Source of the DNA: Podarcis melisellensis
Lineage: Eukaryota
Strand: one strand, 5' to 3'
Assembly (NCBI GenBank): GCA_964234715.1
Contig: OZ174276.1
Length of the DNA stretch: 64,000 bases
The notes under the pieces: generated by a model
What the model was told of the DNA's origin: nothing
Database searches by the model: none
What the model saw: the letters and a program-made list of their open reading frames with translations, nothing else
Translations under genes and position numbers: made by a program
Shown here: positions 6,319 through 36,300 of the stretch, piece after piece
How the letters are laid out: each line of letters opens with the position of its first letter
Numbering within the stretch: position 1 is the first letter of the stretch

Positions 6319-9300
6319 CTGTGTGGTTTACAGAATGTCAATCAGTCAATGATTCTGACTATAGAGAAAGTTAAAGCAACGTAATTTTGGCTCTTTGTTT
6401 TATACAAATTGTTCTTTAGGGACAGTAAATAAACTATCTTTGGTTCTAGTTTTTGCTATTAGCCTAGATTTGATTCTGCTCAGTTACTGCACTCTCATTT
6501 GAGAAACCTTGAAGGAGAAGTAGTAAGAAGAGTTGTCATTATGTAGAAAGTATTATATTTAATAAGTAATAAATATTTAAATAAATAAATAAATAAACAA
6601 ACAAACAAACATACCTCATTCCCTTTTGAGCTAGTTCCTAATATATACACTTTATCTTCCAGTTGGAAACGTATTGGAATATTGTATACTTTAGCACTGT
6701 AAAGCACCATCAAGACATAGGGTTGATCAGCGGCCTTCGTTGAGCTGTCTCTTACTAAGAAAGTGCCATCCTAGAAAAGTAACACATTAAAATATTTTTA
6801 AGACAAATGTAATCACAACTGTGAACAGAATTGATTGCATTTCGAAGCAAATGTGTTCAGGATTAGTCTTGGAGTGTGTGTTCAATTTCAATATTTTTCT
6901 CAAATTACTATATTGATGTTATAATTTAACTCTTCACCTGGTTTATGGTCCTAAGAGCAGCTTCTGCATCTGTCCGGGTTATATCAGCCGCATACCATTC
7001 CTGATTTAGCGGGAGCTGGTTATACTTGAGCCACATGAAAAGAGAGACAAAGAGCTGTTTATTAGTGAGAATATGGTATTAACAGTGTAGGGCAAAGGAG
7101 TACAGAGCTTTGAAAGGCAGGTATGGTATTTATTAACTGAATATGTTACTTGTAAGGTACCCAATCATTCTTTTCTCCTCTTTATGTTTATAACTGAAGC
7201 CATTGTTTCTTTTGGGGGGGGGGTTGCTTATGGAAGTTTGATGTGAAATTGCTGCAGCTCTTGCCCACCAGTCCAGCCCCTGTGTTAATATGACATCAAT
7301 AGCAATAGCAAAATGCCAGCCCATTTTTAATTATTATTTTCTGACATTTAGTTTAGCTTTCTCCTTATCATGAAAAACAGATAAGTAAAAATAACCTGTT
7401 GTATATCTGTAGTATATATGAGTGGAAACTCCTACGTGTGTTGTTGTTAATGGGCATTTTGTCATGAATGTAGTGATGGATTTGGTGGGAAGTCTCTATA
7501 ACCACACTTATTATCCACACTTCCTCTTATTCTGCTGTTTTCTCCTGGGAAAAACTGCTTTTTAGCACTTAATTGTAGTAAATGGCAATTTTCTCTGGAT
7601 TGATACTTGCTCTGGATTGATACTTGCTCTAAAATGATAGTTTTTCATGGGAAAGGAGCAGGCCAAGTGGGAAACTACTCAGACCCATGATTTTTAGGCA
7701 CAGGACAAGCAGAAGTGTGGATGAGTCCTTATGCTTGCATTTGTTCCTCACCGGAGCACAACCTAGCCATTTTATTTCTAATGGCTCCAAATACCAAAAG
7801 AAACACATCTATGTGCACTGATTGCTGCATGTTGATTGCAACAGCGCACTCAGTTTAGAGAATCTATTTTCACAAGATGTTTATACAGTATAAGACTTTA
7901 ATTTCAGTACCTACAAGGGATAAATAAATAAATCCTTGCAGAATTGTTCTACAAGCTGTCGCTCCTTGCTACATATGGACTGTTTTTCTTCAGCTTGTCT
8001 TACCCAGCTTTCCTATGCTTTGCTCATATGTATTCTGTTATTGGTCCTTATTGGCATAAGTTTAAAAAATAAAATCATAAAATCATACAAAGCCATCCAA
8101 ATACATTAGTAATCCAAACACATACAATATATAAAATACTAGATAGTCACCGTTGAGCAAATCAGGCAACTTTTGATTTAGCTTTAAAAATCTCAGCTAA
8201 ATACCCTGAAACAATCTTGGTAGTTTTGGGAGTATCATCCCTCAACAAATATTGGATTATAGACTCTTTGTAAATCTATATTTTAAGCTATAAGGGAGTT
8301 ACCACACCTATCAGCCAATCACCCATTCCTACCACCCTTCTGAGTAATACCCCTCCCCACCCTCTCACTATATATATAAGGGTTTGGTGACTTCTGTTTC
8401 AGTGATCTGAAGAATTGTGCATGCACATGAAACTCATACCAATAACAAACTTAGTTGGTCTCTAAGGTGCTACTGGAAGGAATTTTTTTATTTTGTTTCA
8501 ATTACGGAAGACCAACACAGCTACCTACCTGTCTCAATAAAGAAGTTAGGAAACTTTCTGGGTATGTATTAATGTAAATTTTTAACCAGAATTTGAAAGT
8601 CATAATCCAGCCCCTAGATTCTAAGAGATGCCGGCCTAACTGCACACATAGCTAAATACAGTGGTACCTCTGGTTATGAACGCTCCTGGTTATGCACACT
8701 GCGGGCTACGAGCTCCACTAACCCAGAAGTAGGCGCTTGTGGTTGCGAACTTTGCCCCAGGATGCGGGCGGAAATTGCACGCAGGAGGCGCCATTAGCGA
8801 AAGCGCGCTTCAGGTTAAGAACGGTTTCCGGTTATGAATGGACCTCTGGTACGGATTCAGTTCATAACCAGAGGTACCACTGTAGGAGACGCATTTTGGA
8901 GCTCCTAGAATTTATTGGAAGGATGCTTGTACATCCTCGACTTTGTTGTTAAAGTCAGTTATCCATAAGGGAATCCCATAAAAGAGTTGAAAAACACTTT
9001 TGCACTATAGACCCTAACTGCTGTAGGCACATTCTGGTTACCATCAAAAAAATTAGAATCCTTTAATTCATGCTGCAGTGCATTTAGCTAAGTTGGTTGT
9101 CCTGTTACAATGGGTCACCCATTTTAGATTGTAATAAAAGGTGATCCCTAAGTATTTAAAGCTTTTTACCTGTTCGATTTAACTTGTTCCATTTCTTGAT
9201 CACCAATACGCTATTTATATGGGAGCCATTTGAAAATACTAAGATCTTGGATTTTGAATAATTAGTCGCTAGGTGATTTCCTTGGCAGTAATAAAAGAAT

Positions 9301-12300
9301 GCTTTTAGATACCTTTGGAGCGCAATTCTGGTGCAGGAAAGGAGAGTGTCATCCGCATATAAAAGTATGGGAACTGCCTTAGGTCCTAATCTAGGAGGGT
9401 GGCCATTCACAATGAGTAGATGTTGTTTCATATCATTCAAAAATAGATTAAATAGATGTGGGGCAAGAATACAGCCTCATATGTATGCCTTGGAAGGAAC
9501 TGGGTCTGGCATTCTATCACATAAATTGTTCGCTTGGAATTCACAATATATTAAACATTTTTGATGCTATTATTGTACCTTGTGGTACTGATCCATCGCT
9601 TCATTTTCAGCATTGAGAGAATGTGTGAATGGTCTGTTAGGAATTGGTAATGGTGGTCTTCCATCAGCAGGGCCTTTTGAAGCAGTTCTGCCAATATTAC
9701 CTTCAGAAAAAATGAACATATTTAAAAATTAAATCCAGATGACTTAATGGACATTGGAACATGATTCTAACGAACCACACAAGCTTGACAGGGTCTTGAC
9801 AAAGTAAAAATAAAATTGACTTCTGATGAGAAGATGTTTCATTACAACTTAAATGCTTTAAGCAGTAAGTGGCAAACTGAAGGGAAAGAGTACACAAGTC
9901 TGATAGAAAAACAGGCCGCATAACTCACAAAATCTCACAGAAATGCAAAGGGTCAAACATGAGAAGCATTATGACAGACATTCCTAAATGCATTTATTTG
10001 ATTTATATCAAGGTTAAAGAACCTGGTTCCATCTATTTGCTGCTGGACTATAATGTCCATTATCCCTGGCCATTGTTCATGCTGGATGGGGATTATGGGA
10101 ATTTGAATCTAAAAATAACTGGTGCGCGAGATCCCCCATTTCTGATTTAGGTTATTTCATTACTATACTGCTCTAAAACCTTGTAATTCAAGAAACAAAA
10201 CAACTTGTGTTCAGACAACCCATTCCTCATAAATTTGCATTGTCGCAAAATATTTAATGGAAAAGCTGTTAGTTTGTACTGGCAGCAATCATATGTTTTG
10301 AAAATCTAAGCCTGAATATTTATGAGGTATTTATACAGTACATACTTGGCTGAAAATGTGGTGGTAGTGATCCACTTGATGAAAGAGTGCTGTAAAAATA
10401 AACAATGATTAGCATGTACAAATGAGATCTGATACTTTGTAAGTGACTAGTTTTATATCTTAGAAATGAGGCCAGAAAATACTTGCTGGTATAGCAGAAT
10501 TGGTTGCAGGTTGCAACTCTTCTCTTGTTTCAAATTGTTTGTGGGAATCCACAGGATGAATAAAGGAACTATCCGGGACAATGTGTGTGTATGTATATGT
10601 GTGTGTGTACGTACTCTTATCTATATTATGGGAACATAGTCATTCCAGAACTATGCCCACAGAAGCCAGTTTTAAACTGGTATAGCTGGGTGGGGAGGGA
10701 GTGGAAAATAGTTACAGTGGTACCTCGGGTTAAGTACTTAATTCGTTCCGGAGGTCCATACTTAACCTGAAACTGTTCTTAACCTGAAGCACCATTTTAG
10801 CTAATGAGACCTCCTGCTGCCGCCGCGCCGCCAGAGCACAATTTCTGTTCTCATCCTGAAGCAAAGTTCTTAACCTGAAGCAATATTTCTGGGTTAGCGG
10901 AGTCTGTAACATGAAGCGTATGTAACCTGAAGCGTACGTAACCCAAGGTACCAGTGTACTGGAGTTAGTCTCAATCATGTGAGCAGGATGAATTGCCCTT
11001 ACTGCATTTGATTCTCATAGAATTTAATTCTGTTATAGAATTAAGAATAGCAATGAACAAGTTCCACATAATGTATAATAGCACACAACTAATGGTCAGT
11101 TCAATTCAACAAACCTTTCTGCACCAGGTATCGTCTTGGGTGGTAAAAGGCTCTGTTTAGAATGCGGCTTAGGAGATCTGATTGGAAATGTGTTACATTG
11201 CAAAAATGGCTGGGGAACTGACCTGTGGTGAATATCTGCAAAACACACACACCAAAAACAAAAACACAGTTAACTGACTCAGATTAGGACAGTGAATAAG
11301 AGATTTGTGGAACTACTCAGTTTGTTTTGGAAAAGCGTAGGCATTTCTGACTCATATTCTGGAATTCATTGCAGATTCAAAATGCTGTAGTTCCAGCATA
11401 AAAACTATGAGTGTTGAGGTTCCAGCAGATCTTCAAGTTTCACTGACACAGTAGGCTTCACCTTGCATGAACAAAATAACACATTGCATTTACTATTACT
11501 ACTACTATTATTGTTACTTTTAGTTTTTAATAGCCCACCTTTTTCCCTGACAGGGACTCAAGGCAGCTTACAGATAAAAATAAGAACTGCTAAAAAATTA
11601 ATCATTCAAAACTATTAAATCCTGATAGAATTAATGCCACATTAAAGCGCTTGCACAAATTTAGTATAGTAAGTTTCTGCACAAGAAACCTCTGTCAGTG
11701 GCAGAGGAACCCTCTCCGGCACCCAAGGTGGCGCAGCCTGTATGGACTGTGCATGTGTGGCATCCTGCATGTGCATCTGTATGGAATGCCGCATATGTGC
11801 AGTCTATATGGGCTGCTGCTCGCAAGCGGCATCCCGTATGGACGGGATGTGCCGCCCATGTGCGGCGACCGTACGGGATGCTGCACATGCGCAGTCTGTA
11901 TGGGATGCCACTTGCGCACGGCGGCCATATGGTCTGCCACTTGTCCGTATAGGCTGCCGTGCGAGGGGATTCGAACCGCTGACCATACGATTGGCAAGTC
12001 CTAGGCATTGAGGTTTTACCCACAGTGCCACACGCGTCCCAAATTAAGGATTAGTTTGACATAATTTTTCTGGAGTACAGTTGCTGAAAGAAAATAATCT
12101 TGGCTACCATTACATTTTAGGATTCCACGCATGGAGATGGGTCCAGTAGTATTCCAATGTGGCAATCCTGAAAGCAGTTTGAGTTCCAGTGAAATAAAGT
12201 GGAATTTAGTATCACCTTTTTCTTCCGTCAGATTTCCTTAGAAATTTGCCAACTTTTGGGGAAGCCTTTTACTTAGCTCCTTAGTGGTCATCCATAACTG

Positions 12301-15300
12301 GAAGAAGGCCTAAGCAAGCTGAACTGCATGTTGAAATAAATATCAACAATAATGATAGGAATAGGAATAATTAAGAAATACATTACATACTGCCATCTTC
12401 CATCTGAAAGAAGAAGAAGAAAAGTTAGCATTAGGGTTGTCACTTAATTAAAGATATTTGCTGATTATCATGGGCTGTATTCAAAGCAGTACTAAGCAAT
12501 GCTTGCCTGATGGAAAAATCTTCCCTCTCGTGCAAGCGCTTTAATGAACTAAATAGCTTTAAAGGCAAATAAGCATTATTTCTTCTTTTAGATAATGCAC
12601 ATGTGGCACAGCAGGTATCATCTTAGAATAGTTATTTTCTCTAGTTTCATTTTCTCTAGCCTTAATTCAGGAAAACAGCTTGTTTTATTAGAAGGTATGT
12701 GATATAGTTCTTAAAGTTAGGCAGATGTCAGCCTACTCTTTCCTGAAGCAGGAAATGTTTTCAGATCAAGTACAGTGAGATTTAAACACTTGGCTCTCCC
12801 CAAAATAAGATTCAATTGTAGCAAATTAAATATAGTTTCTACACTTTCTCAAAATGCATACTTACTTCTGTCTTCCTTTCAGCTATCTGATTGTTCCTAT
12901 AGGAAAGAAAGATAAAAATAATTGTATGTATCATGAGACTAGCTGGTACACTCAATATTTAAGAAAAAATATTGCTTGCAATTTACTGCCTAGTTATTTT
13001 GCTAGTCAACCTCCATCAAAGAGGCTAGAATTTAAAATTTTAGTTTCTAGGTGAAAATGTGTTTGTTATAAGCAAGGATCACCCATCTTGGGCACTGAGC
13101 ATAAAAGAGCCTTGAGGGATCAGAAGTCCCATCTAGGCTATCATCCTGTTCTCACAGTGGCCAGGTGCCTATGGGAAACTTGCAAACAGGACTCAAGTGC
13201 AACTCTCCGCTTGTACTTCCAGCAGCTGGTATTCAGAGGCATACTGCCCCCAGCAGTAATAGCTTAAAGGTAAAGGTACCCTTGCCCGTACGGGCCAGTC
13301 GTGTCCGACTCTAGGGCTGTGCGCTCATCTCACTTAAGAGGCCGGGGGCCAGCGCTGGCCGGAGACACTTCCGGGTCACGTGGCCAGTGTGACGAAGCTG
13401 CTCTGATGAGCCAGCACCAGCGCAGCACACGGAAACGCCGTTTACCTTCCCGCTATAAAGTGGTACCTATTTATCTACTTGCACTTAGGGGTGCTTTCGA
13501 ACTGCTAGGTGGGCAGGAGCTGGGACCAAAAGACGGGAGCTCACCCTGCCGCAGGGATTTGAACCGCCGACCATACGATCGGCAAGGCCTAGGCACTGAG
13601 GTTTTACCCACAGCGCCACCCGCATCCCCAATAATAGCTTAAAGGTAAAGGTAAAGGTACCCCTGCCCATTCGGGCCAGTCTTGCCAGACTCTAGGGTTG
13701 TGCGCTCATCTCACTCTATAGGCCGGGAGCCAGCGCTGTCCGTAGACACTTCCGGGTCACGTGGCCAGCGTGACAAGCTGCATCTGGCGAGACAGTGCAG
13801 CACACGGAACACCGTTTACCTTCCCGCTGGTAAGCGGTCCCTATTTATCTACTTGCACCCGGAGGTGCTTTCGAACTGCTAGGTTGGCAGGTGCTGGGAC
13901 CGAACGACGGGAGAGCACCCCGCCGCGGGGATTTGAACCGCCGACCATGTGATCGACAAGTCCTAGGCGCTGAGGTTTTACCCACAGCGCCACCCGCGTC
14001 CCTTAATAATAGCTTAGCCCTCCATTAATTTATCTGATCCTTTTAAAGTCATCCAATTTGGTGGCCATCACTATATCTTGTGGGAGAGAATTTCAGAGTG
14101 TAGCTGTGTGCTGAGTGAGGAAGTATCAGCCCTGAATTTTCCAACATTTAGCCTCATTGGATGGCCTTAAATTCTAGTATTACGAGAAAGGGGAAAAAAC
14201 CCTCTATCCACTTTGTCTGTACCATGTATAATGTACACCTTTATCATGTCTCCTGTTACTTGCCTTCTCCCCCTAAACTGAAAACTCCCACATATTGCAA
14301 CCTTCTCATTTTAATGCCCATACACTTGGTCTGGAAAGTTCCTTTTGGAGCTCCTCATAATCCCTTTTTATTTTAACCATTCTGACCAATTTGATCAGCT
14401 AATCTGACTACCTTACTGCTTACCCTCTAACTCTAAACTACTAATGAACAAGTTAAAAAGCACAGAACCCAATACTGAACTTTGGAGGACACCCACTTCC
14501 TACATCTTTCCATTGGGAGAACTACCTATTAATTCCTACTCTTTTCTTGTTTCTTAACCAATTCCTGGTCCATAAGAGGGCTGTCATCTTATCCTATATA
14601 ACACTTTAATCTTGCACATTTTCCTCCAGTTTAACTTTCTTAAAGATGTCTCTCTGCTAAATCATTACTCTTTGCCTGAACATTCAGTTACAAAATGAAC
14701 CCACCCACCTACCACTGCAAAATATGTTATTATATGGCAGAAAAAAGCCTGAGTATTCATCTTCTGACAAGTGGACCAAAGGCATGCTGGATATTAGAGC
14801 TATGCAACCAATATATTAGTAGGAAGGTCAGGAAATAACAAATCACTATATTACATATTTTGTATGCTTCCACTAAGTTTTATTTTAAAATTGTAAATGT
14901 AGGTTTACTTTATAGGTGGTGGCATCCTTCTAGAGGCAGCATTGTTTCTGTCATAGCTATCAGCTGATGGTACTGGAGGCTTCTGTATCTTTTCTAACTC
15001 TTTTCTAAAATAAAAGAAAAACAGCAAAGAATAGGGTTGATTACTTTTGGTCTGTCATGCTAAGCAGTTAATTGTGATAATCTGTGTCACAGAAAATAAA
15101 ATATTTACCTCAGCTGAGGGGTCAAAGGCTATAAGGAAGGAATAAAGGAAGGTCAAATTAAATGAAAGGGTAAAATATATATTTAAAACGGATTAAAATG
15201 TAAATACAGTAGAAGTGAAGACTTTTCTTACCATTTTGCCTGAAAAGATGAAATAAAAAGAAAAAAAATTAGTTAAAGGAGCTAATTGTGATCGGTGACT

Positions 15301-18300
15301 ACTGTCATGATCAAGTTTAATTGTGTGACTTTAGGACTGTCACAATTTGACTCTGAGAGTATGTTTGTTAACCTACTGCATAGAATACAAAATAGGTGGT
15401 ATTTTCTCTTCTCTCTCTCATAAATCTAAGACATCCTATATGGTATCTCTGAAAATGAATGTGTTCAGGTGATTATTTCCTTTTCACAAAGCAAGTATGT
15501 CACTGACAACTGAGTTGTAAATCTCTCTTTACTTTGGCATCTCTGAGGATAGGAATATACAGTGCGTCAACCCTATCTATTTCCTTTTACCAGCTTTTAA
15601 ATGTTGTGATAACCTCTAGAGAGGCAATAAGGTAAAACATTTCATACTTGTATTACTGAAGCTAAACTGAATTAATTTATAAGCATGCAACTTACTAAGG
15701 AAAGTTTGCAGTATTTGAAATGCTAAAAGACTGAGTCTTGAGAGCCTGTCTTATTGTTCAAGTCTATTCACCACTACACCTTATTAATAGTTGCTACTTC
15801 TGTTACTTTAACTGATATTTTAGATTGCCTTTTTCTGATTATCTCTCAGAATCAGGTAGTAATGTATAATGATGAAGTTTAGCTTAAAATGCTACTACAG
15901 TGAGTTACTTTTCCTTTCTAATCACCACATACAGCACATATTTGTTCATACCCTCCCCATTTATGTTACAGGTAGGTAGCTGTGTTGGTCTGCTGTAGTC
16001 GAAACAAAATAAAAAAATTCCTTCCAGTAGCACCTTAGAGACCAACTAAGTTTGTTATTGGTATGAGCTTTCGTGTGCATGCACACTTCTTCAGATACAC
16101 TGAAACAGAAGCCACCAGACCCTTATATATAGTGAGAGGGTGGGGAGGGGTTTTACTCAGGTGGTGGGAATGGGTGATTGGCTGATAGGTGTGGTAACAA
16201 CCACACCCAATCGCACCACCCTTCTGAGTAAAACCCCTCCCCACCCTCTCACTATATATAAGGGTTTGGTGGCTTCTGTTTCAGTGTATCTGAAGAAGTG
16301 TGCATGCACACTAAAGCTCATACCAATCACAAACCTAGTTGGTGTCAAAGGTGCTACTGGAAGGAATTTTTTTATTTTGTTTCCCCATTTATGGTCAGCT
16401 TATTTTAGTGCTTTGTACAATGTCTGGCAGTTTATAGCTATGAACCAATGCCTACCTGATCGTAGGATGTCTCTGTCAAATGGAGGCCCAGATTTTTCCA
16501 GTGAGGGCTTTTTGCTTCGATCTATGGGAGCTGGTGACAGTGAGAAACAAAAAATATTTTGTTAAACTTGGTGCTAATACTTTATTTTAGACTTTTAAAA
16601 CTCCTCTACATTCAGAGAATACTCAAGCAGTTTATAGTTATCTGGTACAAAACATAATACAGATCATAAAATAGTATTAAAAACTTAAAAAAGAAGAATT
16701 AAGAATGGCAGAAATAAAGTTGACTAATTTGGGACAATTTGGAAAAAAATTAAAGCTTTCAACACTGAAAACATAAAAATCTTGGGGCTTGCTTCACTTC
16801 TAAGTGAAGTGAATTCCTGACAGCTGTCTGGATATGAATTTCAGCACAGTATTTCAGTAATTCTTATAAAGTAATATTCCTTTTTAGAGTTAAAATAAAA
16901 AATTGTTCAACAATTAGTTGCAGGTTGTGGGAAATGCTGGAAGGACAGATGTAAAAATAATGCTTTATGTTTAAAGCAATGTAAATATACTAAAGGATGT
17001 AGTTTTTAAAAGGTTAAATAAAAGCACTTACGTGTAAAGGGTTTGATGCTTTTTTCTCTGATACTCTCATTATTGCTTGAAGGAGAAAGGAAATGTGGCT
17101 GCTAAAGTAATAGATTTAGTAAATACTGTGTCTAGCAGAATGGTAATTACAGATTTGATTTTAATCTATTGAGATTTCATAGCTGCCAACCAGTGTTCAA
17201 AATAACCAAGTATCACAGATCTGTATCACAGAACTGTTGCTTTCCTGTTTTACTTCCTCCACCCACCCCCCATGTCTGGATCTATTTCCAGTTAAACGAG
17301 GGTTGTGAATCTACACAATTTTGAAACATGAATTTTTTGTTTTTGTTTTGCTAGTCCAGCCCTGATTGACGTGTGCAGTGTAATCTGCACTAGATACTGG
17401 CCAACTACAATAAAATAATGCAAACAACTAGTGACATTTTCAGAAATAGGGCTGGTGAATTATTCTGGTAAGGTATTAAAAAGGCTTTTCCAAAGCTGAT
17501 ACACAGTTGTGTAGCAGTTCCTCACTGATTGACTGTGGTTTGCTATGCACTTAATCCCCAGGAAAAAAATAAATACAAAATGAAACAGTACATTCTTTTT
17601 GCACCAATGGAACCTACCCCAGGGCTTCTGCCTCCACTTGGTGGTACAGGGGAAGATTCAGGCCTTTTTGGTGGAATGGGAGGCTGAGTAGATATTTTAG
17701 ACCTTTCTGCTGGCTGTCGATCTGAAGAAAGGAATAACATTAACAAAATAACAGAATATATAGGGTGGGTGGGAATCCTTCTTGCTTGATCTCATTAAAA
17801 AGACACATCTTTATATACTTTGAGACGTCATTTGAGAGAATTAAATTAATCCATTCAGGAAATAAAGCACATTTTCAAGCTTGTAGTTGGTTTACCCAGA
17901 AGGGGGCACAAAAATGTTATGAAAGCTCAAGTAAGATGAAGTTTCAAAATGAATTATTTTAAAATTGCCAATAAGAGTTGGTATTTAGAAAACAAAAAAT
18001 GTTTTCTGTGTCTCCTTCCCAGAACTAGACAATACTCTCTAATGCATTTCATAAATGAAAAGTGTGAAAGAACATTTAACATGGTTACCTATGTATTCTG
18101 AGGCAGCTGGTATTAAAGTGGGAGGAAATAAGGTGTTTCGGTGTGTGTCATCATCATTTGATGGAGGAGGTTCATAATCTGCTTCATCTTCAGCACCATC
18201 TTGATCATTGGGTGTTTCATAGTCCACACCATCTTCATGCTCCGGGTCATCTGGGCTTTCATAATCATCATCACTTTCATCCTGTCAAAACAGAAGTATC

Positions 18301-21300
18301 AGACTGTCAAAAATATCTTAATGTAGCAAGGTTGTATTGTTACATCCCTGTGCTTTCCACTGCTGAATGAAAGTGAATTCTAGAGTTCATGAGAAATTGT
18401 AACAAAGCCTTATTCATTTAAATTGGGGAAGAATGATACATAAAAAACTCACAGGTTTGAATAAATGGGAATTGTTTACAAGTGATTGTGTTTTGATGGT
18501 GTTACAGCAGAGAAGACTAGTGTCTTCTTGGAGGCATCCTACTTTTGTGTACAGCAGGGATAGCCAACCTAGGGCCCTTCAGATGTGGACTACAACTCCC
18601 ATCATCCCTGAGCACTGGCCACACTGGCTGGTGCTGATGGGAATTTCACTCCAATACATCTAGATGGCACCATGTTGGCTACACCTGCTGTATAACATTA
18701 CATTAGAACAGTGTTAGTGTTGCAGAGGAGGGAAAAATACATTTTGTTCAATTTAGTATACTAGCAATCTACTGAATCAAGAAACGTGATATGAGGCTGG
18801 CAAGAAGGCTTAAGCTGGAGGGTGGGCACATCACTTGGATACACAGCAGACAGGCTGAAGGCCAGCTGTTTTTGCAGAAGGAAAACGTAATCACTTCCAT
18901 CAGCAACAATACTGCATCTGATACTGCAGGACTGTAGCTATCTGGGAGCTCTATACACCAGCCACCAGCAGATTGTTTATTGGGTACCACTTTAGCCTGT
19001 ATATTAGAAGAAGTTTGAGTTGTAGTACAAGTGTCTGCAGAGAGTTAGGGAACGGGTCTCAACCCAGAGCTCCCAGCAGCCACATTGATGCTCTTGTTCC
19101 TATGTGAATCTGGTATACTCAGCTTGGGGATTTATAGTGCTATTTAGGCTACAATGCTAGCCTGCCTGAGCATCCAGTCAGCCTGCACATCCAGTCAGTC
19201 TGAGTATCCAGTCTCAGAAGATCAGGCCATATAAAGTTAAGGCCCAAAAGTTTGATCAACCTGAGCAACTTGTTTCTGGTATGAAAACTTTGGGCTGTAT
19301 TCAACTACATCTTACTGTGAAGAGACCTATTATAATTAATATATTATGTTCATTAATCTCAATGGGTCTACTCTGTGCAACACCTTGTTGAATAATACCC
19401 TTTGCCTAGCCCCTACTTTTTTAATGGATGCTGCCTTGAAACACGTACTCTTCTTGACTTTGACCCCTCTGATTACATTTTTAGACCCTCCATTCACATT
19501 CAAGGAAATATGAGTAAATGCCCCTGCAGACCTTCCCTGTCATGGACTGAGCACACAGAGCAATACACACAGGGACACTGGGGTAGTGGGTGGGGCTTGC
19601 GTATGAACACAGAGTGTTCACATGAACATGCCCTCTTGTGCCTTCATATACTCAGATGCAACATCAGGGTATCAGAGAAGAAGAAAAGAGAACAAAACCC
19701 TCATAGGTGAACTCCTATGGCACTTGTCTTTTGAGCTCTAGGATTCAGTTATATCTGCCTCAAGCATTTAATTGTGCAAATCAGATAAGATTTCTCAGAC
19801 TGGACCTCCAGTGAAACATTGGTAACCAGTTAATTGGAAATATATTATTTTCATATGTGCCTCCTTCAAGCATGCCTCTATTTCCTTGAAACTGTAGAAC
19901 AGGCAAGCAGCTGGCCTTTCTGAACAGTCCCAGAGAATGAGATAATCAAGGATGTTTACTCCATCTATCTTAAAAAGTTGAAGAAATCTTATTTTTTATT
20001 TTGTCAAGTTTCAATAGCAGCTTCAGCCCCCAAACAACCTACATTGGATGCCTCTAAAGAGGAACATATGAGTGCAGTGATATTTGCCATGTCATTCTTT
20101 TAAGCTGAATACATTTGTAGTGTTGATAAAAAATACTTACAAAGGAAGACCAACCATCACCTTCATCCTGTCTATATTCTATGGAAAGGCAACAAAAATC
20201 ACACAGCAGCTATAAATCTCCAAGTTCATGATGGTTTTACAATTAACAATTAAATAACTACAAGAATAGTTGTGGCAGACATTAATGAAACAGCCAAGGC
20301 TGATTCACACATGCATGCATATTACCTGGTCAGTCACCTCAGTTGAGAAACATTGTATAAAGTGATACAAAAGCTCTCTGGGTATTGTTTGATGATGTTC
20401 ATTTCACACATATTGCCATATGAATAGGAAAATAAGGACAGTTCCAGATGCATAGCTCAGCAAATTTTAGATAACCAACACATGTGTGATTAATATATAA
20501 TGATCTCTATCAAATAAAACATGAAATATTAGGTCAAGAATTACTTTCATGTGCACATGATCCAATTTACACTAGGGAATTTAATAGAGTATTCAATTCT
20601 ACCACCAGAGGACCCAGGAAACTATCGTAATATTAGTTTATTATCAATCATCGGAAAAATCTATACTCGCTTCCTGCTAACCAGACTAACCCAATGGGCT
20701 GAAGATTCCAATCTGATAGGCCATGAACAGGCCGGGTTTAGACCAAATCGTGCTTCTATTGACCATGCAATAATTCTATATCATTTGGCGCGGAAGTATT
20801 CTTCCCCCACTCATGGTCTTCTATGTGCCGCTTTTATAGACCTGAAGGCGGCTTTTGACAGTATCTCTAGAGAGCTGTTATGGGAAAAACTGGCAAAGTG
20901 GGGCATAGATAAAAGGCTCTTGTGGCTTATGATCAAATTACATGAAGGGACGGCCGCTAGGGTGAGGTTAACACCTGAGGGCGATCTCACAAACTCTGTA
21001 CCAATAAATAAGGGGGTACGACAAGGGTGCATCCTTGCCCCCTATCTCTTTAACCTCTATATTAGTGACATGAGATCTCCCCTAGCTGAGGCCCAAACCA
21101 CCATTCGTGCACCCAGGCTTGTAGACTATTGCTGCCCCTTATTATTGTACGCTGACGATGCGGTGATCCTCTCATATTCAAGAATCGGTTTGAGGAGGGC
21201 CTTTAAGATTTTCGCGTTATATTGCCAAACAAATTTACTTACTATTAACCATTCCAAATCTAAAGTCCTAATTTTTTCCACGAGTCGTAAATTGTATAGG

Positions 21301-24300
21301 TGGGAACTCGAGGGGAAGCCAATCGAACAAGTCTACAAATTTCAATATCTAGAAATTTACTTCCAGCATAATATAGGATGGAAAGCGTATATCACATACT
21401 TACAAAATAAGGGTAAAGCCCTTATCTACGCTCTATTACGCTTCTTCTTTACAGAGGGAGGGGGCTATGCATGTTCCATCCGCCTTAAAAGTTTATAGTA
21501 CAAAAGTGGTAGCAACTATAGCCTATGCGGTCCCTTTATAGGGCGCTTTTGTAAACCTCATGCCTCTGGTGACATTGCAAAATCTTTTTCTCAGACGCCT
21601 TTTGAAACTACCCTCCTGTGTAAGCAACTCTGCTATTCGCTTAGAACTTAAGACCCCCTCCTTAGAGATCCTGATGTGGAGACATGCCTTTAATTATTGG
21701 CTGTCCCTTTGGCATAAATTGCCTAATTACCATCTTATTCAGTGCCTTTGGAGAGATGAATTTACCAGCCCATGGGCAACAAAAATCCATTCCAAACTGT
21801 TGTCTTATGGAATCTCTCCTTCCGATATACTAAATTTAGATCTAATTACAGCTAAAAAGGTCATCAAACAAAGATTGGAGGAGGTTGATTTGCAACAAAA
21901 TCTTACTACAGGTGGAGGTACATGTTCCCCGATAAATTAGGGCATTACATCTATGTCCCAGATACCTTGATATCTGTCTACCTTATCGGTTGCGTCGCAT
22001 AGATTCACATTTGTTAGAGCCAGATTTAATGTGTTCCCCTCAAATGTGCTGAGCAATAGATTTTCTAACGGTAAAACCTCTGTTTTATGCGCATGTGACA
22101 ACAAATCAATAGAATCCCTTTATCATATCTTGTTTAATTGTCCTTTATATATTGTTCCCCGATCAAGGATTCTGAGTTCAATTATTTTGGAAACCGTTGC
22201 TAAACCACCTGAATTACATCTAGCCTATTTACTCCAGGACATTGACTCTTATAGAACATTACAGGTTGCCAGATTCCTGAATTCAGTTCTTTCATATAAA
22301 AGACTTCATGGAATGCTACATGACTATTAAAAATCTAGTAAACTCTATGCATCATCTTTATATTCAAGGCCACAATACGGTACATCTAGAGATTGTATGT
22401 AATGTGAAGGAGATTATGCGTTGAAATAATTTAGTTGATATTTTAGAATGTAAAATGCTATTTTATTTATTGATTGGTTTTACCTTGTGGGCTTATAGCC
22501 AAATAAAGTATTATCTATCTATCTATCAAAGTATTCAATTCTGCAGCTCTGGCACCAATCATCAATTGGCATATATGTTAAGATAAAACCTTAACAGTAA
22601 ATTCTAGCGTCGTAAAAATCACGTTAAAATCTGACCATATGCTCTGGAAAAGGATTGTTTTGGCTATATGAGATTTCAAAAGAAGCACTTTCACTGTATG
22701 GCCCAGGCCCAGAGCTGAGGTACATACCTTGGCTTAATAAGCTGTGGTATGCATAATCCTTGTTCCTTTGTGCTCTATCCCCATGCTGCCCTTTCCTTTC
22801 TCTATAGTCACCAGGGTAAAAACAAGTTAGGATCTTAAACTAGTGTCAAGTTTCTGGCTTCTTGGTCCTGGTAACCATACCACATAACAGGAAACAACAA
22901 AGACTTCCTATTTTGAGAGAAGGGGGGAAAGCCAGCATGAGGATGGAGTACAGAGGCAAAGCGGGCCCATGCAGATATTGCCTTATTAAGTGAAAAATGT
23001 AACTCCACACTAGGCTTCTTGAGCAGCTTTACAACTGCATGAGTGTACAATTGCTTCTTTGAAAATATATAAGAATTAGCATAAGGAGAATTAGAAATTC
23101 TGTGTACATTATTAGGGATCAGTTTTTCTTGTGCTACATTTTGTTTATAAACACTAGCATGTTATATATTTCCCCACTGAATAAGAAAAGGTTTGATCCA
23201 TTTAAAACTTGCATTTAGGCTCCCCTGAAATAAATGTGAAAAATTAGACATGACTTAAGTCCCATTGATTTTAATGGGAACTAAATGCAATTAACAGGGA
23301 GCAATCAAAACCAATGATTTGTTGGGATGAGAGGGGTTTGGAAAAGGTGGATTTCTGGCTGAGCCTGGGCTCAGCTGGCGCTATGTTGGTTAAAGTCTGC
23401 TGTCCTGGCTCAACTGTACATAACAGTGTGTGAGTCTTCTATTCTGGCTCAGCTGCTTCTGCTGAATGGAAAACCAACACAGTGTATATCCAAACTCTTA
23501 TTCCAAACTCCATTCAGGTCATGTAACCTAGCAACCCAGTGGAAATTAAGTGGCAAAAAGGGTGGTGCAAGTCAAACTCAATTTTAAACATTTAGTTTCT
23601 CCTCCGCTAGTCTTGGACTGCTTCTAAAAAGCACCAGCACAGTCTACCATGGTGTAAATTACAATGTCTTCCTGTAGTTTGGATTGCTCTGCTAGTCTGG
23701 ATCCAATCCATAGACAGAGAACACTACAGAACAAAACTGAATTTAAAGAGGGTGGCTTCTAAATATCTGGAAAGTGGACACAGATATAAATTGGCAGTGT
23801 ATTTACCTGGATTTTCAGGTACCTTCTGTGTTTGTGACCTGCTGCAATTTTGGGAGGAAAATGAGAAAGTTAATAGTTCATATTTCAATTATAAATTGAA
23901 TATATTTGAGATGAGCATTATAATACCTAGCCATCATGTATCCAAATAAATGTGCCTTTTAACCGACATCATTTAGGCAAAACGTGCCGAAATACAGTGC
24001 CTAAAATGATAACATGTAAAATCCTGGCAAAGTGCAAAAGATCCGTAACATAACACCTGAAAGAATAAGGTTGTGTGGTTAAACAGATGCCATTTGCCAC
24101 TGTCCTGTGAGATTCCCCAACTCTGCCCCTCTTTGCTGCCTGTAGTTTTGTGAGGCAAAAAACTTTGCAGCACACTGACATGATGTGTTTGGTATTACTT
24201 TGTTGCCAGGGAGGAAAGCAAGGAATAAATAGAGGACTGATGTTTTTAGCAACAATCAGAGGTATCCTACAGCTTCATGTTGCTGCCTCAGATACTTCCT

Positions 24301-27300
24301 TTGAGCAAATACAGTAAAATCACAAATGAGTATCTTGTTTTGCAGTTTTGAACAACAAGCTGTTTGAGGCCAGTGCTCCTCCCATGAACATTGAGGGGGA
24401 AATAAGTTTCTCTTTTTTAAAAGCTAAAACCTCAGAAGTAGCATTTTAAAGGAGGAGCAACTGACTGCCCCAGCAAACCGTTCTCAGTTTAAGTAGCCCA
24501 ATGTGCTCCTCTGGGATATATACAAACCACAATAACCTCTGAAGTGGTTTACAAGGATACAATACAGAAAATATATATATACCGTATTTAAAACAACAAA
24601 ATCAGCTAAAAAGCCTGCTTNNNNNNNNNNNNNNNNNNNNNNNNNNNNNNNNNNNNNNNNNNNNNNNNNNNNNNNNNNNNNNNNNNNNNNNNNNNNNNNN
24701 NNNNNNNNNNNNNNNNNNNNNNNNNNNNNNNNNNNNNNNNNNNNNNNNNNNNNNNNNNNNNNNNNNNNNNNNNNNAAATTCAGTACGAAGGGTCTGACCT
24801 CAACTAGAAGGAAGTTCCAGAAAATTCAGTCTACAATGCTAAACACACTGCTCCTGGTGCGTAGGAACAGTGACTCCCCTAAAGTTGTCAGTGATTAAGC
24901 AGGGATATAAAGGATTAGGCAGTTTTTGACCCAAATTGTTAAGGCCCTTGTAATTTAATACAAGGACCTTGAACCTGGCTTGGTGGTGTATGGGCAGCTA
25001 ATGCAAATTTCTGAGCATCTGATTTATATGCTGGCAACAGTCTGGCAGCAGTCTAGATGCAGCTTTTTGCATCAGCTGGAGCCTCTGGATCAGGCCCAAG
25101 GGTAGCCCCATGCAGAGTTCATTCCAGTAATCAAGTCCTGCGGTTTCCGGTGCATGGCCCATCATGGCCAGACTATCCCTGTCCAAGAATGGCAGATGAT
25201 GTACTAGCCACAGCAGGTAAAAGGCATTCCATGCACTAATGATCTACAAACCATTTAAACAGAAAGCATCTCAATCACACTCATTTGGGATTCTAGAATA
25301 AATATCTGGGTTCATGTTCAGGTTAGATCGGGTCTTCTGAAATTTTGGACTTGTTTTTTCTATTCATTCATGGAGTATGGAAACCATATTTAATGTATTC
25401 AAATTAAGTTATACAATCGAAGGTGTACATGGTCACCTGTTTGCTGCTCCTCCACATCTCATTTAAATATAGTGGCCTTTTTTCCTCCACCCCATGGTTA
25501 AATTTGATTATGTTCTCATTCACCAATTTCTACTCCAAGAAATTCAAAAAATAACTCATTTACTGTTGTAACAAGAAAAAAAATACTGAACAATTTCCCT
25601 ACCTTTTTGGAAAAAAACTTTTTCTTTCTTCATGTCGGTTTATTTCCTGACTTAACTTGCTTAGAATTCTAAGGTAAAAAAACATGTTATTAGAGCAAGT
25701 CAATATGTTGGAAGGAGAATCTCAGTTGTATTGTACAATTCAGCCAAAGTTAAGCATTTTTATTAATGTCAATGGGAAAAAGTTAAGCACACGCTCAGGT
25801 CTATGGTTAAAAATAATGAGAATAAAAGGTGCATTTTGTCCTAGTTTTTCTTATTTGTTTTAATGTGGTAAATTCAAACTGTTGAATATAAGAATGATTT
25901 CTTTTTTAGCAGAGGAATGAAAGACAGAGACAACCAAATATATGTTTTTCTCAATTTCATGCGAACAGATAAACCTGCTGTTAAGTGGAGCTATGACATT
26001 AGAATAATTTTAACACCCAAACGAAGCAATTAGTAAACTTAGTGCAGAGCATGGCAGCTTTGGCACATTGCTACTAAAAGAGAAAAGAAAACAAATAATA
26101 AGGTAGAAACCCCATGCATTAAATACATGTTGTTTTCATAGACCAGGCATGGCCAAACTTGGCCCTCCAGCTATTTTGGGACTACAATTCCCATCATCCC
26201 TGATCACTGGTCCTGTTAGCTAGGGATGATGGGAGTTGTAGTCCCAAAACAGCTGGAGGGCCAAGTTTGGCCATGCCTGTCATGGACGAACAACACATTG
26301 TCTTCTTTCTCAAGTTATGCTAAACCATGGATTGGTGTAACATGCATGAGCAGGAATGAGCCACAGAGAGTCTCAGTCATGCTTTCCTCCCATCTCTTCC
26401 TCTTGCACAGCTGGGATCATTTGCTTTCCTTTAACCATGGTTTGTTGTGTAATTTGGCATAAAAAACTAAGATTAGATCTCTAGTTTATTTCAAACACCC
26501 AGCTTCAAACTGGTTTCTTAAGGTATTAAGAAGCTAGGTATTAATCACAATTGTGTATAAGGGTGAACTGTGGTTAACTAAATGTAGTAGTTTCTGAAGT
26601 TCTCTCTTCAGCCATGTGGAAGGACAGGGGAGGGTGTAATGTGCAAGTTGCAGGCTTGTTGGAGCTCATTCCTGCCTTTGCAAAACACACTAAACCATGC
26701 ATTTGTGTGATTTGCAAATGGGTTAGGGTTAGGGTCTAAACCACTGAGCCTCTTGGGATTGCTGATCTTAAGGTTGGCAGTTCGAATCCATGTGACAGGG
26801 TGAGCTCCCGTTGCTTTGTCCCAGCTCCTGCCAACCTAGCAGTTTGAAAGCATACCAGCGCTAGTAGATAAATAGGTACTCCTGTGGCAGGAAGGTAAAT
26901 GGTGTTTCCATGTGCTCTGGCACTCGTCACAGTGTTCCATTCACCACAAGTGGGTTTAGTCATGCTGGACAAACACACACACAGTTGTACTCAGTACTGT
27001 GCGAGGGGTTTTTCACATCCTTCCTCCCCACTGCAGATCAATGTGGCTTCCTTCAAAGTCTCCTGTGAGGGTTTGAGGACCCCCATAAAGGCCTGGGGTG
27101 TGGGATCTGCAGTGGGAATTGCCAGTAATCCTGTGCAGGCAGCTTGTGCAAATGGAAAGTTGTTGCCTTCATTTAATATTTGGTTATTTCTCCCCCACCC
27201 CGTTAATTCCTCATCATAGGCTCTGCTATGCTGTCCACAGTTTATCCTGCACTTCCCCCCTTCTTAGAACTAAGTATCTCATACATCAGATGCTACTAGC

Positions 27301-33300: not shown

Positions 33301-36300
33301 TGATTACAATACAAATGATCAACCTAAAAACAGCAGCAAAATACAAGAACACAACGAGCATCTCTTACAACCAATACGTTAACCAACTGAATCAAATGCA
33401 TGTTTAAAAATTAACATTTTCAGTTTCTGTCGAAACTGAAATAAAGGAAGATAACCTAGCTTCTTGGGTGAGGGAATTCCACCAGGAAAGTTATCTTGGT
33501 GTTACCACCAGTCATGCCTCAGAATAGCTTACTCAAGGGGTCCATAACAGCTGATCTTAAAGGATGGATAGATTCAGCACATATGTAATAAAGGACTCAT
33601 AAGGCCAGTGTGTGGGAGAGATAGACGTAAGATTTAGGACTTCTGTGTTTGAGGAAGTCTGATGTACTGAAGTTTCAAGATACTTCTAAATGATTAAAGG
33701 GATTTGATGACACATTCTTTGTCCTGAAAGCAAATTCCTTGAAATACAGCAAATATGTATTCTGTAGACTACTTACATAAAGTATGTAAGGGTGCTTCCA
33801 GATGGTTGTTTATTGTAGGATGTGTGCTCCTTATGCATACAATTCTTTAAATTTTACAATTACCAAACCATATAAAAGATACGAAAAATGGGATCTCACC
33901 CCTAGAGACTCAAATCTCACAGCCTTATGCTTCCAGTTGTGTGGCAACATTGGTTACAGTATACAGTCATATCAGCCCAAAAATTCTATAGTGTGAGCGT
34001 GTGTGTGTGTGTGTGTGTCCTGCCCTCTTTCCTGCAGCTGTGTATGTATGAAATGGGTACCTGAAAAGGTATCTCTTGTTTTTATTCCCTTTGGTATTTT
34101 TATTTTATTGGTTAGCTTCTCTGTTAACACTAGTTGCTAGATTTTCTTGTACTGTACCATGAAGTCAGCATGGCACCCTCCAAAAGTTTTCAATAATTGG
34201 CTATCGTTAGTCTTGCTGTTAGCAATAACTGTCCAATGTGTTTATAATGCAGGTCCATATTATCTCCTGAATAAAGGTTGAATAATGCCAACTTGGGTTG
34301 TTTAATAGCATTCTGCCCTTTTATTGCTTTGATTTCTCTGAACACCCAAACATGTTCACCTTTGTACAGGTCTACCACACGTACGGATGTAATTCCCCTA
34401 CCCCAAAATGTACATCCCCTCTGACAGGCTTGAATGCAATTTGTTTGTGGCATCCACGTGGCACTTCTGGCATCGTTTGCACAGACCTCACAAACATTGG
34501 TCTCAGTGGGAGCTAACTGCAACTAAGTCTGGATCCAGACCAATGTCTTTAATATTTCTTTTAGAAAAGGCAGCACTAGTTCAATACATTTTGCTGCCTG
34601 AAGCAGTCAAAATGATGCATTCACACTAAGGAGGACACTTTTAAAAATCTTACTGCCCCGCTTCAGTTCATCTATCCCCACTACCCTTTAGTTGTTTCAC
34701 CCTGTTGCATGAACAGGATTGGCCCCAAGAAAATGCATTTGATGAAAGCTGAGGTGAACAGATTTTATCTGTCTTCTCCATACCATACAGTAACTTTGTA
34801 CCCATTTTCCACATCCACCTTAGAATCTGATTATATCATCTGATTTACTTACGGCATTCTTAGCTTTGGAAACTTCTGAATATCATTTTCAGACATATTC
34901 TGAAACAGAAACACATGCAGTATGTTATAATGGTGCCAGTACAACATGTTTTGGTCACTGTAGTTTTGATTATTATAAAATAAAACTAAAAGTGCTGTAG
35001 TTACATAGAAGTGGTATTTAAAACTTGACAATCTGCTTAAATGTGACAGATACAATGCACCACAGAGTAATCAAACCTTCCACACCTTTTCACCACTTTT
35101 CTTAATAATTCATCCATATCTCTCTTCCTATGCAACCACACCATTTCCACTTAGCTAGTAATCCTCTCCTTTTAATCCAAAGGAATGACCATTTTTGAAA
35201 ATGTAATTTTATAGAAAAACTTACCAGAAATCTTTGTCCAGTTATGTTGTATTTCCTTGCAACTTTCTCACAGTCCTTGAAGTTTAGCTGCTGATGAAAA
35301 GACACATATTCAGGAAAACTTGATCATTTTAATAAAGAATACATTTATATCAAATAGGTCTCTGAATAACCATAGCTGACTATTATGCATGCTTACTCAG
35401 AATTAAGTCTCATTAACATAGGCACTTCTGGAATTCCTCTGTGTACATAGGATTACATCCTTAGACAAATTCATCACTAAACTCATTTATTTCATCTGGA
35501 CTTACTTTAGCAGAGCTAGTATATGGTTTTTAAGGGCACAATTTGCCAGAGCTTTTCAGCCTGCTGAAATTAGAATGGAAAAAAAACTTCAACTTAAATT
35601 TCAACAGGAATAATGTTACTAAAGGCATTGAGATGATAAAAGGCACAAAGATAAAAGTATATTAACAAAAATATTTTCCCAAGTTCTGTCCCTTGTGTAA
35701 CAATAAAATGCAGATTGACATGTACACTGATGTAAAAATCCTCACAAATTACAAAGCAACAAAAATCCCTCCCATCTAATCCTATCTTCCTGAAAATTTA
35801 GATGGCAGTGTTTAGTTATCTTCTATTAACATATTGAGCAGCTATGAGTAATTTAAATTAAAGAGAGCTTTTCCTATCATTTTAAGGGTTTAAGTACAGT
35901 GGTACCTCGGGTTAAGTACTTAATTCGTTCCGGAGGTCCGTATTTAACCTGAAACTGTTCTTAACCTGAGGTACCACTTTAGCTAATGGGGCTGCCTTCT
36001 GCTGCCGCACCACCGGAGCCCGATTTCTGTTCTTATCCTGAAGCAAAGTTATTAACCTGAAGCACTATTTCTGGGTTAGCGGAGTCTGTAACTTGAAGCA
36101 TATATAACCTGAAGTGTATGTAACCCGAGGTACCACTGTAAAACAATTCAAAATAACTGTGGTATATGAAATGGCTGACTCCAAACTGGAGTACTCTTGT
36201 AGTTTTAAGAGGAAACCTTTTCTCTACTTTGAGGATAAAATGCACTGTTGCCATGCGGTAGTAATTCACAAACGAAATCTAGTGAATTGCATTTCCTTCC

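Follow-up and report, generated by a model that had tools for sequence, protein, structure and literature searches.

Location of the Insertion in LCP2

The window, by which we mean the whole 64-kb stretch of DNA analyzed, carries on its minus strand the ORF pieces of LCP2 (SLP-76), located in order at 39419-39538, 34852-35070, 18042-18284, 16456-16530, and 6498-6770. On this single strand they provide an N-terminal SAM region, three tyrosine motifs of the acidic region, an RxxK motif, and a C-terminal SH2 domain, the latter also recognized by Pfam (E = 1e-5). The tyrosine motifs DYESP, DYE(S/T)P, and DYEPP and the Gads-binding RxxK are what we take to be the hallmarks of human SLP-76. A PDB search with the SH2 exon retrieved only the SH2 domain of BLNK, as the nearest solved chain, and the identity of the gene therefore rests on the hallmark motifs. 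The ordered motifs and the SH2 domain on the minus strand agree with the preliminary description of this DNA, and the host gene is LCP2. Two of its parts flank the insertion studied here:

16456-16530, minus strand: LCP2 exon upstream of the insertion, encoding ...PAPIDRSKKPSLEKSGPPFDRDILRS, with its donor between 16456 and 16455 and an acceptor that we infer
15232-15239, minus strand: candidate microexon of 8 nt, GCAAAATG, preceded by a polypyrimidine tract and a cag acceptor and followed by a gtaaga donor

The PAPIDRSKKPSLEKSGPPFDRDILRS segment holds the Gads-binding RxxK motif of SLP-76, and a contig of sequencing run X15 breaks exactly at 16455. Joined to the preceding exon, the candidate microexon would give ...S-GKM and the frame fits, as judged from the sequence only. 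The donor is 72-73 nt away from the insertion and the candidate microexon is ~727 nt from its other end, in accordance with the position initially reported.

Anatomy of the Insertion

Two inverted arms of 160 nt each (16001-16160 and 16224-16383), 96% complementary and separated by a spacer of 63 nt, were identified in the 64-kb window. The full features, including the target-site duplication (TSD), are as follows:

15955-15965: left TSD copy, CCCCATTTATG, perhaps 1-2 bases longer, read directly
16383-16393: right TSD copy, read directly
15966-16198, minus strand: left arm, a complete unit of ~230 nt in the LCP2 sense orientation
15966-16000, minus strand: AC-rich tail of 34-35 nt, in the left arm only, delimited by the alignment of three copies
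16195-16382, plus strand: right arm, inverted copy 5'-truncated by ~11 nt and without the tail

The TSD, 10-12 bp in length, flanks the whole inverted pair, and the initial claim of a TSD-bounded insertion of two inverted copies with arms of ~160 bp thus stands. The left TSD is AT-rich and includes ATT, the cleavage motif favoured by the Anolis enzyme of Penelope-like elements (PLEs; PMC11167929). The left arm contains, in order, a CCAAT-like box (16177-16181), a G/C-rich box, a TATA box (16123-16131), the hammerhead motif described below, an ATG (16080-16078), and 38 open codons; both arms are open over the 38 codons following the ATG. The outer end of the left arm is located ~114-115 nt past the ATG of the element, and that of the right arm ~79-81 nt past its own ATG (16304-16306). 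The 5' ends of both copies abut at the center of the insertion, and there is no ORF body between the right arm (~190 nt) and the left one (~230 nt). It must be noted that two of the features looked for in a PLE insertion were found, namely an inverted 5'-truncated copy adjoining another with a single TSD around both, and two alternative 3' ends (+114/115 and +79/81) differing by the 34-35 nt tail.

Hammerhead Motifs

Minimal hammerhead ribozymes were sought with a descriptor consisting of a helix I of at least 4 bp, CUGANGA, an optional bulge, a helix II of at least 4 bp, GAAA, an insert of 0-6 nt, and UH. The sole match across both strands of the 64-kb window was in the left arm, while only 0.005 matches were expected by chance (mean of 200 first-order Markov simulations). 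Each arm contains one copy of the motif:

16061-16098, minus strand: intact minimal type I hammerhead motif matching the descriptor, with predicted cleavage between 16065 and 16064
16286-16323, plus strand: hammerhead copy of the right arm, identical except for G12 to U at 16312

From 16098 to 16061, the minus strand reads GUAU / CUGAAGA / A / GUGUG-CAUG-CACAC / GAAA / GC / UC^AUAC, as in the earlier reading, which had described an intact minimal type I core in the LCP2 sense strand. All the core positions are present (C3-U4-G5-A6-N7-G8-A9, G12-A13-A14, A15.1-U16.1, and H17), C17 being 16065. Likewise, an unpaired A (16087) lies between positions 9 and 10.1, the 10.1-11.1 pair is G16086-C16073, helix I is formed by the 4 bp of GUAU/AUAC, and helix III has one pair within the self-complementary A-G-C-U. 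The element ATG is within stem II, in loop 2. The role of G12 in the hammerhead core is established. The opposite copy had been considered core-broken, and the change of G12 to U at 16312 should indeed inactivate it, judging from its sequence.

The scan with the Hammerhead_1 covariance model proposed in the preliminary description did not provide any additional support. None of the Rfam hammerhead models (Hammerhead_1, HH3, HH9, HH10, and HHII) matched anywhere in the window at the gathering score, and the permissive scan (E<=10) of 15900-16450 did not detect any hammerhead, which is expected because these are minimal variants. The scans gave weak matches to Rfam miRNA precursors only, which were rejected as noise produced by the long hairpin.

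Other Copies and Abundance of the Family

The window contains one more copy of the unit:

8304-8532, plus strand: solo copy of the ~230-nt unit, antisense to LCP2, 92% identical, with a degenerate hammerhead

Its 5' start and its long 3' end are like those of the left arm, and its lesions (loss of 1 nt from helix I and of 1 nt from loop 3, and two changes in helix II) agree with the degeneracy previously attributed to this third copy. The near-identical 5' ends of the three copies in the window fit a discrete ~230-nt unit better than random 5' truncation. Across eight copies there were two classes of 3' end, the long one being also found in copy L002 and the short one in the right arm and copy L001. 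The helix variants of 8304-8532, L001, and L002 mostly break pairs and seldom compensate, in a set of only seven copies; this is expected because the copies are decaying. There was no head-to-tail repeat of the unit at the locus, the copies being inverted or solo, and ARAGORN did not reveal any tRNA-like SINE head in 8000-17000.

The family of pseudo-LTR (pLTR) ends is very high-copy and commonly palindromic. In sequencing runs kept as contigs, the summed word depth was ~6x10^5 over 16000-16199 vs. ~13 in the flanks, and in four runs tens of thousands of paralogous contigs piled up within the repeat. Inverted pairs with differing junction points were also found elsewhere (L001 and L004), and the joints from 16072, 16075, and 16098 to 16284 and 16286 correspond to other genomic copies with other palindrome centers, not to the LCP2 locus. 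The LCP2 insertion appears to be shared with one related species, whose contigs enter both ends of the insert, with no empty-site joint listed and an entry of only 22-27 nt, below the 31-letter rule. A 22-mer conserved in the element had no matches (0) in a scan of JGI metagenomes.

Penelope-Like Origin of the Element

The 38-amino-acid peptide following the ATG was compared with 1.84 billion proteins. It gave only seven matches, in every case short ORFs running through repeat copies, and in no case with reverse transcriptase (RT) or GIY-YIG similarity; four of the seven were traced to short contigs of a single ENA metagenome assembly. Vertebrate transposon ORFs are poorly covered by the protein library. 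Moreover, the 64-kb window does not contain any telomerase-like RT or GIY-YIG ORF linked to the pseudo-LTR. The only RT ORF, at 20551-21495 (plus strand), is of LINE type, with YADD, and far from every copy. Given the lack of RT/GIY-YIG homology, the basis of the PLE assignment is the architecture of the element rather than similarity at the protein level. Truncated or non-autonomous copies are expected to lack such an ORF, and its absence lowers the certainty about the PLE clade, not about the mechanism. The Penelope-like nature claimed for the element end is supported by its sequence layout (TATA box, hammerhead, and ATG), the hallmarks of minimal PLE hammerheads, and the anatomy of the tail and the inverted copy.

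Folding of the LCP2 Transcript

In LCP2 pre-mRNA the antisense arm would be transcribed first and would zip with the sense arm, forming a hairpin of ~180 bp. The computed fold-back had a free energy of -323.8 kcal/mol (z = -35), and the ribozyme fold ranged from -6.8 to -9.9 kcal/mol; the isolated segment 16061-16098 takes the hammerhead shape at -9.9 kcal/mol (z = -0.3). These values favour the masking of the ribozyme by the first-transcribed arm that had been suggested before. When modelled with the antisense arm, the hammerhead segment reached -64.5 kcal/mol vs. -6.8 when folded as a monomer and -11.1 in a double hammerhead, the latter being less stable than two monomers (-13.6) or a dimer with swapped stem II (-30.6). 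The motif would consequently be locked inside the long hairpin of the transcript, according to these models. In LCP2 RNA the mutated arm is simply the antisense strand and does not constitute a ribozyme. In addition, the extension of helix III in a minimal ribozyme would require another copy in the sense orientation; none is present nearby, and the LCP2 hammerhead should therefore not cleave.

Proposed Origin and Neutral Decay

The locus very probably originated from a single retrotransposition of a PLE end into an LCP2 intron, which generated an inverted pair that decayed neutrally, with no host function indicated. The insert would consist of the promoter-bearing pseudo-LTR end together with the hammerhead and 80-115 nt from the beginning of the reading frame of the element. 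In one event at an AT-rich target site, both strands of a staggered cut may have primed reverse transcription, as the anatomy and the published in vitro work suggest. One start would have taken place at the distal internal site (~+115), leaving the 34-nt tail, and the other at the proximal site (~+80), and the two cDNAs would have met 5' end to 5' end, giving the fold-back within the 10-12 bp duplication. The same product can also be obtained by twin priming or template switching.

The hammerhead would be the consensus motif of the family, passively carried with the insert. Neutral decay after insertion would have led to the loss of G12 in one arm, the other happening to be intact. One intact and one broken core are the neutral expectation at a decay of about 2-4%. 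There is no sign that this arrangement is special or selected: any inverted pair places one hammerhead in the sense orientation, copies of the family are very numerous, and the structure is a standard PLE signature (PMC8557442). Neutrality, which the preliminary description had kept as its own fallback, is the best reading, as argued from the abundance of the family and from this expectation.

Alternative Explanations

It is possible, though we are inclined to doubt it, that the insert is a discrete non-autonomous element of ~230 nt, retrozyme- or SINE-like and pseudo-LTR-derived, mobilized in trans by the PLE machinery, the insertion being equally neutral. The 5' start that both arms (the right one to within 11 nt) have in common with 8304-8532 would fit such a unit, but this end was compared in three copies only and the inner junctions are quite different elsewhere (L001, L004, and the other joints). 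Similarly, the 38-amino-acid peptide is in no long ORF, but the protein library is thin in vertebrate transposon ORFs, and the 38 codons open in both arms are what a genuine ORF start copied recently would show. The very high copy number also favours this explanation, and so does a 2026 preprint in which the non-LTR retrozymes of vertebrates are traced to PLE pseudo-LTRs and the reptilian units average 176 bp (preprint 10.64898/2026.07.22.740005), but there is no tandem array at the LCP2 locus.

It is unlikely that the fold-back acts on LCP2, its long dsRNA being edited by ADAR or sensed in some other way, masking a cleavage-competent ribozyme, and altering SLP-76 dosage or the splicing of the upstream exon to the 8-nt microexon. 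In favour of this reading, long intronic inverted repeats generically serve as substrates of ADAR, the stability of the hairpin is extreme, the donor is only 72-73 nt away and the microexon ~727 nt, and the sense-arm core is intact. Nevertheless, nothing in these traits is locus-specific in a very high-copy and commonly palindromic family, the six differences between the arms do not show any A-to-G bias, and 42-44% of the related Xenopus elements are intronic (preprint 10.64898/2026.07.22.740005). In addition, the activity of minimal PLE hammerheads is undetectable in monomers and low in dimers (PMC4209133), and RNA-seq of the Anolis PLE did not show ends at its hammerhead site (PMC11167929). 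The more specific proposal that the ~180-bp dsRNA is edited or processed, or that the hammerhead cleaves at a low rate on unwinding, and that microexon inclusion or SLP-76 dosage is thereby tuned in the lizard lineage, is more improbable still.

Finally, a DNA transposon or MITE whose terminal inverted repeats would be 160 bp long, which the long inverted arms and the TSD superficially resemble, or a fold-back assembly artefact is hardly credible and was rejected, given the solo one-orientation copy with the same ends (8304-8532), the asymmetry of the outer ends, just one of which has the tail, the inner junction varying among copies, the 96% and not 100% identity of the arms, and the independent runs of two species reaching into both junctions.

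Returning to the single PLE-end retrotransposition, the insertion is probably unimportant as a feature of the host gene, being one among very many copies of a young and abundant element. Its modest value, for transposon research, is that the locus would preserve a clean natural trace of how PLEs integrate according to the mechanism put forward on the basis of the Anolis in vitro work: one TSD-bounded event, with arms ending at the two RT start sites (~+80 and ~+115) and abutting by their 5' ends, in a PLE family and a lizard lineage other than those of the Anolis case.

Comparison with Known Systems

The motif resembles the minimal hammerheads of metazoan PLEs (Cervera and De la Pena, 2014; PMC4209133) in its type I topology with the CUGANGA...GAAA core, the extra unpaired base after A9, the G10.1-C11.1 pair, the 4-bp helix I, the one-pair helix III with a palindromic A-GC-U extendable by two copies, and the location in the terminal repeat of the element. 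Pairs of motifs on opposite strands, 100-700 bp apart, were also reported in PLEs (PMC4209133). Unlike the schistosome PLE families, in which helix II has 7-8 bp, the lizard motif has 5 bp, which together with a loop of 4 nt make up a perfect 14-nt palindrome. Unlike the families of that study, it is a predicted motif with no Rfam hammerhead match, in a sequence family specific to the lizard lineage.

The layout is like that of Poseidon_Ac (PAc) from Anolis carolinensis (PMC11167929), in which a TATA-like box is followed by a hammerhead overlapping the ORF start. They also share an AC-rich region ~111-118 nt into the ORF as the start of reverse transcription, a tail of 30-40 bp that is not always present and spans the interval between two start sites, and a target that is rich in AT and includes ATT. 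The cutting and extension of both target strands, demonstrated in vitro for PAc, would also be common to the two. Beyond the layout there is no recognizable sequence similarity to PAc, and no full-length partner was found. The cut is 16 nt past the ATG vs. 26 in PAc because the ATG is in loop 2 and not at the start of stem II.

The inverted 5'-truncated copy abutting another and the 30-40 bp tail at one end only are also found in complex PLE insertions (Craig et al., 2021; PMC8557442), although the lizard copies are very short (~190 and 230 nt) and without an intervening ORF body. Finally, animal non-LTR retrozymes (PMC7229834; preprint 10.64898/2026.07.22.740005) form head-to-tail tandems that give circular RNAs, whereas this locus is an inverted pair with a minimal rather than canonical type I motif; they have in common with it that they are short, hammerhead-bearing, non-autonomous units related to PLE pLTRs and abundant in non-avian reptiles.

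Host gene

The host gene of the insert is well supported as LCP2 (SLP-76), in agreement with the preliminary description, by five ORF pieces that are ordered and all on the minus strand. Their motifs were recognised by comparison with human SLP-76. Pfam confirmed SH2 in the piece 6498-6770, the nearest solved chain to which is the BLNK SH2 domain.

Features of LCP2 and of the inserted element
39419-39538, minus: ORF piece, N-terminus resembling SLP-76
34852-35070, minus: ORF piece with ...ENDIQKFPKLR...
18042-18284, minus: ORF piece with DYESP, DYETP and DYEPP motifs
16456-16530, minus: ORF piece with PAPIDRSKKP, the RxxK Gads-binding motif
6498-6770, minus: ORF piece, SH2 exon (Pfam SH2)
15232-15239, minus: candidate microexon of 8 nt, GCAAAATG; acceptor cag, donor gtaaga, strong polypyrimidine tract
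16123-16131, minus: TATA-type box TATATATAA, hammerhead ~37 nt beyond
16080-16078, minus: element ATG, within stem II, then 38 open codons to the element end

The candidate microexon has canonical flanks, keeps the reading frame and, joined to the final base of the preceding exon, would give G-K-M where human SLP-76 has a GKK tripeptide. A 648-nt contig of public run X15 matched 16455-16651 and departed from the window exactly at the predicted donor (16455/16456), its other side extending into the intron upstream. The contig would fit a partly spliced LCP2 transcript, X15 being a small run that is RNA by guess. An LCP2 intron also holds a fragment of a LINE-type retrotransposon (20551-21495, plus strand), which has no relation to the hammerhead element; its open frame of 315 aa includes an RT domain (Pfam RVT_1, E = 8e-33) and the motif YADD. 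At 24621-24775 lie 155 consecutive N, either an assembly gap or masked sequence.

Inverted repeat and hammerhead motifs

The insert (15966-16382) is an ordinary short Penelope-like element (PLE) end, a fold-back insertion of known kind. On the plus strand of 15950-16400, arms of 160 nt each (16001-16160 and 16224-16383) were 96% complementary with a spacer of 63 nt, and the target-site duplication CCCCATTTATG bounded the whole insert (~15955-15965 and ~16383-16393). Within the left arm, sense to LCP2, the minus strand (16098 to 16061) reads GUAU-CUGAAGA-A-GUGUG/CAUG/CACAC-GAAA-GC-UC^AUAC, the sole match on both strands of the window to a relaxed minimal type I hammerhead descriptor written for this analysis. 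Since a mean of 0.005 matches was expected from 200 Markov simulations of the window, the motif is not due to chance. The 38 nt of the right-arm motif (16286-16323, plus strand) are identical except at 16312, and this copy should be dead because U there replaces G12, the general base of the hammerhead. In the third copy (8304-8532, plus strand; 92% identity to the left arm) the hammerhead has lost a single base at two places and is substituted at two positions of helix II. The intact core on the LCP2 strand, the GAAA to TAAA loss in the opposite arm and the degenerate third copy had been read correctly in the preliminary description. The check suggested there, a scan with hammerhead models, gave no Rfam hammerhead match to the motif at the gathering score or at E<=10. 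The only Rfam matches were weak ones to miRNA precursors, set aside as caused by the hairpin.

The arms differed at 6 of 160 positions and by one 4-nt indel; with copy 8304-8532 as reference, five of the six differences were private to the right arm, without A/G bias. At 16112 both arms have G (sense orientation), where copy 8304-8532 and almost all paralogous contigs have A. This shared G traces both arms to one subfamily or template, which fits a single insertion event.

Predicted folding and activity in the LCP2 transcript

As LCP2 lies on the minus strand, its transcript carries the right arm (antisense) ahead of the left arm (sense). The whole insert was predicted to form a single hairpin at -323.8 kcal/mol, against a mean of -123 for shuffles (z = -35.5), and the 38-nt motif to pair with its antisense partner at -64.5 kcal/mol, versus -6.8 for the monomeric hammerhead and -11.1 for the helix-III-extended double hammerhead. 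An isolated 57-nt segment was predicted to take the hammerhead shape at -9.9 kcal/mol, no more stable than shuffles (z = -0.3). The only other window copy (8304-8532) is antisense to LCP2 and, therefore, no cis sense partner for dimer formation exists in the window. The masking by the first-transcribed arm proposed earlier is thus thermodynamically right in these predictions, yet there would be little activity to mask, because single minimal motifs have undetectable and dimers low activity (Cervera and De la Pena, PMC4209133) and RNA-seq ends were not found at the Anolis PLE hammerhead site (PMC11167929). A functional reading of the fold-back for LCP2 has no support beyond generic plausibility.

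Abundance and age

Contigs from four public runs were compared with 13000-18999. Summed word depth in run X4, a second individual of the species, was ~6.5 × 10^5 over 16000-16199 against ~13 in unique flanks, so the family has very many near-identical copies. Two other repeats of very high copy number lie at 13200-14000 and 18400-18800 (depth up to 10^6 and ~5 × 10^4, against ~13 in unique sequence); many joints in the former jump 379-382 nt, which suggests that members of that family contain an internal duplication or are built in tandem.

One X4 contig crossed from unique intron into the insert and covered 22 nt of its left end; the right-flank contig begins at 16389, within the duplication, and so does not enter it. 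In run X5, a related species with ~1.2% substitutions in the flank, contigs entered both ends by 22-27 nt, and no empty-site joint was listed in the X4 or X5 comparison. For this reason, the insertion most likely predates the split of Podarcis melisellensis and the X5 species, with overlaps below the 31-letter criterion. With ~28 constrained positions and 2-4% decay, we estimate that about half of the copies keep an intact core; therefore, one intact and one broken hammerhead is the neutral expectation. Any inverted pair necessarily puts one motif on the host sense strand.

Origin of the inverted pair

The left arm extends 34-35 nt (AC-rich, 15966-16000) past the right-arm end point, so the arms end at +114-115 nt (left) and +79-81 nt (right) from their own ATG. 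Two such 3'-end classes recur among the eight copies inspected, of which three are window copies and five come from contigs L001-L003, reached via spurious ORFs. In Anolis PLE, reverse transcription has its internal start in a stem-loop of AC-rich sequence 111-118 nt into the ORF, an optional "tail" of 30-40 bp corresponds to the sequence between two start sites, and the enzyme, which favours ATT within AT-rich DNA, cuts both strands and extends them (PMC11167929). The simplest mechanism would be a single integration event in which cDNA synthesis was primed from both ends of a staggered break, the two cDNAs beginning at alternative start sites and being joined 5' to 5'. Twin priming or template switching would alternatively yield an identical inverted product.

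Contigs L001 and L004 also carry inverted pairs, with inner junctions different from that of the window insert. Both belong to ENA assembly ERZ27260045 (L001, 46-344; L004, 28-194), whose element copies are presumably host (reptile) DNA within a metagenome assembly and whose short 'proteins' are gene-caller products of element repeats. In L004 the inner junction falls on the hammerhead, where it extends helix I to 8 bp.

Comparison with known Penelope-like elements

In sense orientation, a CCAAT-like box, a G/C-rich box and the TATA-type box precede the hammerhead, with the ATG in stem II; the three boxes may constitute a promoter. A search of 1.84 billion proteins with the 38-aa peptide after the ATG matched nothing but short, spurious ORFs, a JGI metagenome scan for a conserved 22-mer of the element gave 0 matches, and the one RT ORF of the window belongs to the LINE type. 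Because the 5' starts of the three window copies all lie within 11 nt of one another, a discrete unit of ~230 nt that is non-autonomous, instead of a truncated autonomous PLE, stays a live sub-hypothesis. The tie of the insert to an autonomous PLE is architectural. The Poseidon_Ac consensus of Anolis carolinensis (PMC11167929 supplement) has, head-to-tail, a TATA-like box, ~46 nt and a hammerhead that overlaps the start of the ORF, in the order seen in the Podarcis unit.

Metazoan PLE minimal hammerheads are reported with opposite-strand pairs spaced 100-700 bp and with emergent traits beyond the descriptor of that study (PMC4209133). The 16061-16098 motif has all of these traits: one base left unpaired between positions A9 and 10.1, the G10.1-C11.1 pair, a short helix I and a palindromic helix III (A-GC-U). 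Stem II and loop 2 form a perfect 14-nt palindrome, GTGTGCATGCACAC (16073-16086 and 16298-16311), and pairing between two copies of the RNA is predicted to go through it (-30.6 kcal/mol) rather than via helix III. This stem-II-swapped dimer differs from the arrangement usually drawn for these minimal hammerheads.
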